A DNA stretch of 63,167 nucleotides, counting the filler, from Octopus bimaculoides (taxonomy: Eukaryota): NCBI RefSeq assembly GCF_001194135.2. It is 13 parts of 10 records of this genome, joined end to end, with 100 filler letters (N's around TTAATTAATTAA, not from the genome) between each part and the next. Parts side by side here need not be neighbours in the genome. Positions count along the whole stretch, not along the records: positions 6,323 to 20,214 come from NC_068990.1; 12 more parts are not named here. One strand, given 5' to 3'. Below are positions 9,443 to 9,994 of this stretch, in pieces (position 1 is the first letter of the stretch; each line of letters begins with the position of its first letter). The notes beneath the pieces were generated by a model. It worked only from the letters and a program-made list of their open reading frames with translations, searched no databases and had not been told where the DNA came from. A program made the translations under genes and the position numbers.

Positions 9443-9514
9443 TCAGTTGATACCACAGGGGAAATTAGAAAATACTGTCGTCAAAGAGCTGATTAATGCA
9501 GTTATTGATCTTGC
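9443..9514 (-). CDS. Probable terminal coding exon of a small secreted-peptide gene
   Basis: atgattttag|GCA AGA...AAC TGA; phase 0 matches the upstream exon; reads ARSITALISSLTTVFSNFPCGIN*. Alternative acceptors open exons at 9396 and 9377, so the C-terminus is uncertain. Confidence 0.45.
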   Translation of the reverse strand, partial: ARSITALISSLTTVFSNFPCGIN

Positions 9515-9545
9515 CTAAAATCATGTTTGTTCGAATGGGGTCAAT

Positions 9546-9585
<40 letters not shown>

Positions 9586-9717
9586 AAGAGCGAGTGTGAG
9601 ATGCAGTAGGGCAGAAACATGGATACAGAAGAAAGGAAAGAATGAACCACAGTAGAAATATCACATACCGTTTGTGTTTAGCAAACACTGAATAATAAAT
9701 ATGTGTTAATCACTTAC

Positions 9718-9810
9718 TGTGACCTCATCTTGTCTTGCTTCAACAGACTGAAAGGTGGATACACAGGCCAAAATGGCGGCGATGATCATTACGACGAGAA
9801 ACTTCTGCAT
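9718..9810 (-). CDS. Signal-peptide exon of a small secreted-peptide gene
   Basis: Exon 9818-9718 is bounded by tttccttttatatttcag| and ACA|gtaagt. ATG at 9810 gives MQKFLVVMIIAAILACVSTFQSVEARQDEVT: basic n-region, hydrophobic core, V-E-A cleavage site. Confidence 0.75.
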
Positions 9811-9924
9811 TATGGAGTCTGAAATATAAAAGGAAATTATGTTATGGAGCACATAAGCACACACTCATATTACAGATACATCCGCCGTCAATATATACAT
9901 ATATAAATAATCGGCAGGGCTTAC

Positions 9925-9963
9925 ATTGTGACTCAAAGACCAATTGTTGGCACTTATCAAACT
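9925..9963 (-). other. Predicted non-coding first exon of the secreted-peptide gene
   Basis: Starts at the A of an initiator-like CCAGTT and ends at CACAAT|gtaagc, giving a 106-nt GT-AG intron (9924-9819). Confidence 0.55.
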
Positions 9964-9994
9964 GGTTTCAAATCAAGGGGGTTGTATTAATATA
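9960..9994 (-). promoter_or_regulatory. TATA-like box plus initiator
   Basis: TATATTAATA begins at 9994, 31 nt upstream of the A (9963) of CCAGTT: canonical TATA-Inr spacing. Confidence 0.5.

Follow-up and report, generated by a model that had tools for sequence, protein, structure and literature searches.

In insects, peptides of the pigment-dispersing factor (PDF) family serve circadian output; their known roles elsewhere are in the migration of pigment in crustaceans and in the arousal of feeding in Aplysia. To our knowledge, the function of PDF-type peptides has apparently not been studied in cephalopods. The gastropod cerebrins are the mollusc members of this family, which is reported in all eight mollusc classes (PMC6425005), and arthropod PDH/PDF is treated as orthologous to cerebrin (PMC6425005, PMC8557429, PMC4772807). 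Secretin-type GPCRs have been assigned to the lophotrochozoan PDF/cerebrin family (PMC8557429) and, according to PMC4772807, which cites Li et al. 2001, cerebrin has an effect on the motor pattern for feeding in Aplysia. We analyzed a stretch of Octopus bimaculoides DNA of 63,167 nt, referred to below as the window, in which positions 6,323 to 20,214 (“the piece”) come from NC_068990.1. On the minus strand, 9818-9718 is, with a probability of about 0.95, the first coding exon of the cerebrin/PDF-type neuropeptide precursor gene of this species (Table 1). This gene is already in RefSeq: it is a conserved neuropeptide gene of a bilaterian family, and not the lineage-specific effector that a preliminary description of this DNA had proposed. 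Nothing points to the venom or antimicrobial role which was also raised there.

The preliminary description had placed a compact secreted-peptide gene of three exons between 9994 and 9443. Reading of the sequence recovers all the signals on which it relied, at their positions and on the minus strand (slashes mark exon boundaries). A stretch of 39 nt (9963-9925) begins at the A of an initiator (CCAGTTT, A at 9963) and ends AAT/GTAAGC (9925/9924). It is followed by an interval of 106 nt closed by a pyrimidine tract and an AG (tttccttttatatttcag, AG at 9820-9819), then by the 101-nt exon 9818-9718, with an ATG at 9810, an A at -3 and the end ACA/GTAAGT. The next interval, of 203 nt, includes a (CT)n run and leads to 23 open codons and a TGA (9514-9443). 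Joining 9818-9718 to 9514-9443 yields exactly the 54-aa product that had been proposed.

Table 1. Features of the locus in window coordinates. Percentiles and scores are those of the splice matrix described in the text.
Feature	Position	Strand	Splice matrix	Remarks
First coding exon, cerebrin/PDF prohormone gene (probability about 0.95)	9718..9818	minus		8 nt of 5' UTR and 93 nt of CDS (31 codons, MQKFLVVMIIAAILACVSTFQSVEARQDEVT); next intron in phase 0
Predicted signal peptide	9736..9810	minus		25 codons, MQK / FLVVMIIAAILACV / STFQSVEA; n/h/c-region test
3' splice site of the upstream intron (acceptor 9820)	9819..9838	minus	98.0th percentile, score 7.9	Pyrimidine tract tttccttttatatttc and AG (9820-9819)
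5' splice site GTAAGT of the long phase-0 intron (donor 9717)	9712..9717	minus	96.7th percentile	Annotated protein departs from the genome here
Initial 3.4 kb of the intron that separates the coding exons	6323..9711	minus		Leaves the piece at its edge; contains 9514-9443 and the acceptors 9396 and 9377
Terminal exon of the preliminary description (acceptor 9516)	9443..9514	minus	64.7th percentile, score -0.7	Best read as intronic; weak acceptor, no poly(A) signal
TATA-like box TATATTAA (9994-9987), initiator (A at 9963) and 39-nt exon 1	9925..9994	minus		Unconfirmed; probably not the promoter of the gene
Donor of the 39-nt stretch	9924	minus	97.5th percentile	

The 31 residues encoded by the exon 9818-9718 were searched exhaustively with HMMER against 1.84e9 (1.84 billion) representatives. 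A single match was obtained, with 100% identity over 31/31 residues (E=8.4e-10): P0001, a “hypothetical predicted protein” of Octopus vulgaris. The 90% cluster of this match holds two O. vulgaris models as well as XP_014770792.1, a protein of 76 aa named “PREDICTED: cerebrin prohormone-like [Octopus bimaculoides]”, in which the “PREDICTED ... -like” wording is an automatic RefSeq label. XP_014770792.1 (MQKFLVVMIIAAILACVSTFQSVEARQDEVT / EIIGLASKILEIAIHMDKPRGLSKRNHGMIDTLINIPDLDKVGRK) opens with exactly the 31 residues of the exon. A secreted-peptide precursor gene hidden from a long-ORF view is therefore real, as the preliminary description had claimed, while its qualification as “unrecognised” has to be dropped.

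The DNA around the XP_014770792.1 gene (L001; GCA_001194135.2, CM046610.1:79,096,446-79,126,487) was then aligned to the window, the window coordinate being 19811 minus the L001 coordinate. The two are 100% identical in 6323-12188 and in all the other non-N blocks of the piece. By tblastn, residues 1-31 of XP_014770792.1 lie at L001 10001-10093, i.e. window 9810-9718, and translation is annotated to start at the ATG at 9810. The annotated protein confirms the donor at 9718/9717: it goes on as EIIG where a genomic read-through would give VSD-stop. The acceptor at 9820/9818 is confirmed through the O. vulgaris models: these read ...IPQ-N-SIMQKF against D-SIMQKF in the genome, so that the protein departs from the genomic sequence exactly at this AG. 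The comparison with annotated proteins documents the identity of the gene and the boundaries of the exon, and both splice sites and the start codon had been placed exactly. This middle exon, with its two boundaries, is also the sole part of the three-exon model confirmed by external evidence; the locus is the same in XP_014770792.1 and in the window, and the gene model of this protein lacks both the proposed third exon and the 54-aa product.

The second coding exon is found at L001 19905-20042, beyond window coordinate 6323 (L001 13488), where the piece ends at an assembly gap. Residues 32-76 are encoded by L001 19905-20039, followed by a TAA stop at 20040-20042 and, 102 nt 3' of this stop, by an AATAAA. 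The acceptor of this exon is very strong (tttctctcgtttcag/G, score 12.9). The intron between the two coding exons is in phase 0 and measures 9,811 nt in the assembly, 1,600 N included. No part of EIIGLASK...GRK is encoded anywhere in the piece.

Coding exon 2, read from XP_014770792.1 and L001 19905-20042, encodes EIIGLASKILEIAIHMDKPRGLS-KR-NHGMIDTLINIPDLDKV-G-RK. Across the junction the precursor thus reads RQDEVT/EIIGLASKILEIAIHMDKPRGLS - KR - NHGMIDTLINIPDLDKV - G - RK, six residues of the propiece being given by exon 1. In full, the 76 aa comprise a signal peptide, a 29-residue precursor-related peptide (RQDEVTEIIGLASKILEIAIHMDKPRGLS), Lys-Arg, a 17-residue peptide, Gly, Arg-Lys and the stop. 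Cleavage of the signal peptide is predicted after VEA25 by the -3/-1 rule. The layout of XP_014770792.1 is the classic one of PDF/cerebrin precursors. These are small (about 70-100 aa) and start with a signal peptide, here recognized by a simple n/h/c-region test. They carry one C-terminal peptide, preceded by KR and followed by Gly and basic residues, as seen in ...GLS-KR-NHGMIDTLINIPDLDKV-G-RK-stop. The mature peptide has 17-20 residues, an Asn start and, in molluscs, the core ...D-x-L-x-N-[LI]-P-D-L..., all of which are present in NHGMIDTLINIPDLDKV. The precursor layout of the preliminary description (signal peptide, propiece, basic cleavage site, mature peptide) was therefore right in kind, but the mature peptide that it had named, SITALISSLTTVFSNFPCGIN, was wrong.

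We compared the locus with its ortholog in O. vulgaris (OX597823.1; L002), where two hypothetical predicted proteins, CAI9728540.1 and CAI9728539.1, are annotated; in their 76-aa precursor part they are identical in protein to XP_014770792.1. Window 7886-11960 and the O. vulgaris locus share 86% identity with gaps and 92.3% without, and at this level (~92%, gaps excluded) the two octopuses are so closely related that exon and intron cannot be told apart by conservation alone. Most of the indels between the two species fall in microsatellites. In the signal-peptide exon 98/101 positions are identical: one difference lies in the 5' UTR and the two coding changes are both synonymous. The interspecies pattern fits one real exon with non-coding DNA on both sides.

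The O. vulgaris models differ from XP_014770792.1 by an N-terminal extension of 86 aa, drawn from exons that precede the signal-peptide exon by ~33-43 kb. They span 58.5 kb and start 43 kb upstream of this exon (L002 10001-10010 and about 19978-20219). The extension is of low complexity and looks like translated 5' UTR; the true O. vulgaris start is almost certainly the Met matching window 9810, where the RefSeq model of O. bimaculoides also starts. At the other end CAI9728539.1 (199 aa) has a splice junction in the codon that precedes the stop (AGAAA/GTAAAG), from which it continues into extra 3' exons (KLTISTKLPLQ / LNPEVKF...). The corresponding sites are L001 20034-20042 and 20309-20341, and L002 64897-64929 and 68449-68526. 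The first of these extra exons is conserved in O. bimaculoides, where it ends at a GT donor, and the G-R-K-K processing site is kept. This form may be a real isoform or an annotation artefact.

To what extent the signals of the piece could arise by chance was evaluated by ranking splice sites, scored with a generic matrix for metazoans, among all its 1,381 GT and 1,272 AG dinucleotides, and by searching its ATGs for signal peptides with a simple n/h/c-region and -3/-1 test. Only 1/462 ATGs, counting both strands, opens a signal-peptide-like frame: that at 9810. Markov simulations of the piece (order 1-3) gave 0.05-0.12 such ORFs expected, and ~0.003 per piece if a strong donor and a strong acceptor are also required; the criteria were set after the candidate was known, and these expected counts therefore flatter the signal-peptide exon. 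Judged on this internal evidence only, the middle exon seemed real and the last exon questionable, and the promoter signals were uninformative. Could the frame nevertheless be a chance ORF, i.e. a fortuitous ATG and hydrophobic run in AT-rich, microsatellite-rich non-coding DNA, with splice signals picked post hoc? The piece is otherwise non-coding, with many microsatellites and no Pfam matches in six-frame segments; the GC content of the exon (0.455) is merely at the 88th percentile, a value uninformative by itself; and at the simulated rate a gigabase-size genome should hold hundreds of look-alikes. But 0.003 are expected in the piece itself, the coding differences from O. vulgaris are all synonymous, and the exon encodes residues 1-31 of an annotated neuropeptide precursor whose exon 2 carries a recognisable cerebrin/PDF peptide, so that a chance origin is extremely improbable. 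A self-repeat search also places the exon outside any repeat. The exon being that of the cerebrin/PDF gene, the TATA-like box, initiator and 39-nt stretch in front of it (9994-9925) might still be a real promoter (proximal or alternative) and leader exon used in O. bimaculoides. The donor AAT/GTAAGC is strong and kept in O. vulgaris, and CCAGTTT fits the initiator consensus YYANWYY at a canonical spacing to TATATTAA. However, 15 correctly spaced pairs of TATA-like box and initiator can be counted along the piece, three of them with a GTRAG donor within 200 nt, and because of these 15 pairs the promoter signal carries no weight. From TATA to start (10000-9964) identity to O. vulgaris drops to 68%, and a 6-nt deletion together with substitutions removes the TATA-like box. 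The 39 nt are 87% identical, below the local substitution identity of 92%, i.e. no better conserved than their background. The O. vulgaris models use another 5' exon, ~32.6 kb upstream of the signal-peptide exon in L002 (OX597823.1), which ends ...ATTCCTCAAA/GTAAGT (...CCTCAAA/GTAAGT). Its final A gives ...IPQ-N-SIM, whereas the final T of the 39-nt stretch would give ...FESQ-Y-SIM, hence Tyr and not Asn: O. vulgaris uses an exon other than the 39-nt stretch. Neither tblastn nor a degenerate DNA pattern detected a counterpart of this O. vulgaris 5' exon in the window, which places the upstream exon of O. bimaculoides outside the piece or in an N gap. The promoter and leader of the preliminary description thus stay unconfirmed, and a role for them in this gene is unlikely.

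The remaining part of that model, the stretch 9514-9443, would make of 9994-9443 a self-contained three-exon gene for a lineage-specific secreted effector of 54 aa ending with SITALISSLTTVFSNFPCGIN, or else a minor isoform of the cerebrin gene. The frame is indeed open and in phase, and O. vulgaris keeps AG, frame and TGA alike, with 70/72 identical nucleotides (97%). Yet in the 4 kb around it 7.7% of the 72-nt windows reach the same conservation or more (70/72 or better), and both interspecies differences are nonsynonymous in this frame (S to F, L to F). Its acceptor is weak: -0.7, against 8.8-8.9 for the unused acceptors at 9396 and 9377 and 12.9 for the real one. These two alternative acceptors also lie within the intron. 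Neither AATAAA nor ATTAAA is found in the 650 nt downstream of the frame, in agreement with the remark that no AATAAA was seen nearby. The peptide of 9514-9443 is absent from all three annotated proteins of the two octopus species. The 54-aa product had no exact counterpart among about 15 billion proteins, and a literature string search with the peptide sequences also returned nothing. The three-exon gene is therefore very unlikely. It is likewise very unlikely that 9514-9443 serves as a rare alternative terminal exon; the secreted isoform of 54 aa made in that case would have the signal peptide of cerebrin and lack the cerebrin peptide itself. Both the terminal exon and the product of 54 aa in the preliminary description are abandoned in favor of the cerebrin/PDF gene: the product with its “mature peptide” SITALISSLTTVFSNFPCGIN is an artefact of an exon joined to intronic sequence, and the real continuation is EIIGLASK...KR-NHGMIDTLINIPDLDKV-GRK, in an exon 9.8 kb downstream.

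Other searches with these sequences were equally negative. The unspliced ORFs (34 and 52 aa) and nine other ORFs of the window had no exact match on record. A scan of metagenome contigs with the 54-aa product gave no relative. Pfam gave nothing meaningful for nine six-frame segments and the 54-aa product, and Rfam nothing at the gathering threshold over the piece. The octopus and Aplysia peptide strings were not found in the supplements of De Oliveira et al. A word-index protein search with the 54-aa product gave no candidate sharing three 5-residue words, but such negatives are not trustworthy for short hydrophobic queries: this one is a false negative, since the annotated protein shares 31 identical residues with the query and was caught by the exhaustive HMMER search.

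Several other elements were observed around the gene. About 0.9 kb upstream of the signal-peptide exon lies an inverted repeat (window 10667-10836 and 10913-11082) with arms of 170 nt, 72% complementary and 76 nt apart; the arrangement is the same at the orthologous O. vulgaris site, and the whole (10667-11082) resembles a MITE, or two short interspersed elements placed head to head. A dispersed repeat of ~160-220 nt occurs at window 15534-15753, in the long intron of the cerebrin gene (L001 18283-18499) and at several places in L002, with at least 9 copies at 70-80% identity in the 78-kb O. vulgaris locus; the window copy adjoins a low-complexity GA/GAA-rich stretch (about 15330-15580). At 17985-18058 (plus strand) ARAGORN reports a tRNA-Ser(cga) of 74 nt, which scores 23 bits with the Rfam tRNA model (gathering score 29, E=0.02). 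This sequence probably represents a tRNA pseudogene, or else the head portion of a tRNA-derived SINE, and its region is orthologous in O. vulgaris with 85% identity. Dense microsatellites (CATA, GT/GTAT, GA, AT, TG, CA) lie at 6405-6558, 9228-9310, 9546-9594, 10177-10265, 12129-12188, 14290-14390 and 19440-19560, and the piece contains three assembly gaps (12189-12857, 16029-16921 and 18278-18954).

By analogy with the way in which precursors of PDF/cerebrin and of other amidated neuropeptides are known to be processed, the octopus precursor would enter the ER co-translationally and lose its signal peptide. A prohormone convertase would then cut after Lys-Arg, a carboxypeptidase would trim the C-terminal Arg-Lys, and the exposed Gly would be converted into a C-terminal amide. 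The expected products are the 17-residue NHGMIDTLINIPDLDKV-amide and the 29-residue precursor-related peptide. The peptide would presumably be released by neurons and act on a secretin-type PDF/cerebrin GPCR. Given the roles of the family in insects, crustaceans and Aplysia, it is a reasonable candidate for work on rhythms, sleep-like states and body patterning in octopus. As a discovery it carries little weight because the gene is already in RefSeq and the family is well described. The case also illustrates what can be read without database searches: a short signal-peptide exon and its splice sites were placed to the base, while the next exon, ~10 kb off, was missed and the gene was closed with the nearest open frame.

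Compared with the arthropod PDH/PDF precursors, that of octopus shows the same succession of signal peptide, precursor-related peptide, KR, a single amidated peptide with an Asn start (18 residues in arthropods), and G followed by basic residues. The difference lies in the sequence of the peptide: NHGMIDTLINIPDLDKV has only 3-4/17 residues identical to arthropod PDF and PDH sequences. An hmmscan of the 76-aa precursor against Pfam-A (E up to 10) gave no match to the PDH family, and only a weak, chance-like match to DUF6689. The Pfam PDH model is short and built mostly on arthropod sequences. With such a model, and just 3-4/17 residues shared with arthropod PDF, the missing match weakens the case very little. 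For Aplysia cerebrin, identity to NHGMIDTLINIPDLDKV rises to 9/17. Ungapped alignments with the published bivalve peptides give similar values: 8/17 identical residues with oyster NLGTVDSLYNLPDLLYRamide (PMC4200219) and 9/17 with scallop NAGTIDSLYNLPDLFAAamide (PMC5996578), with a shuffle p <= 1e-5 in both cases.

The peptide is thus closest to the cerebrin/PDF-like peptides of molluscs, described in oyster (PMC4200219), scallop (PMC5996578) and Aplysia (Li et al. 2001, cited in PMC4772807). Like these, it has 17 residues, with an N-terminal Asn directly after a dibasic site. It shares with them the core G-x-[IV]-D-[ST]-L-x-N-[LI]-P-D-L and, at the C-terminus, a Gly amidation signal with basic residues behind it. 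Their precursors, too, resemble each other in being small, with one copy of the peptide behind a signal peptide and a precursor-related peptide. Within this common frame, the octopus peptide is distinguished from those of bivalves by His2, Met4, Ile9 (Tyr in bivalves) and its -DKV tail.
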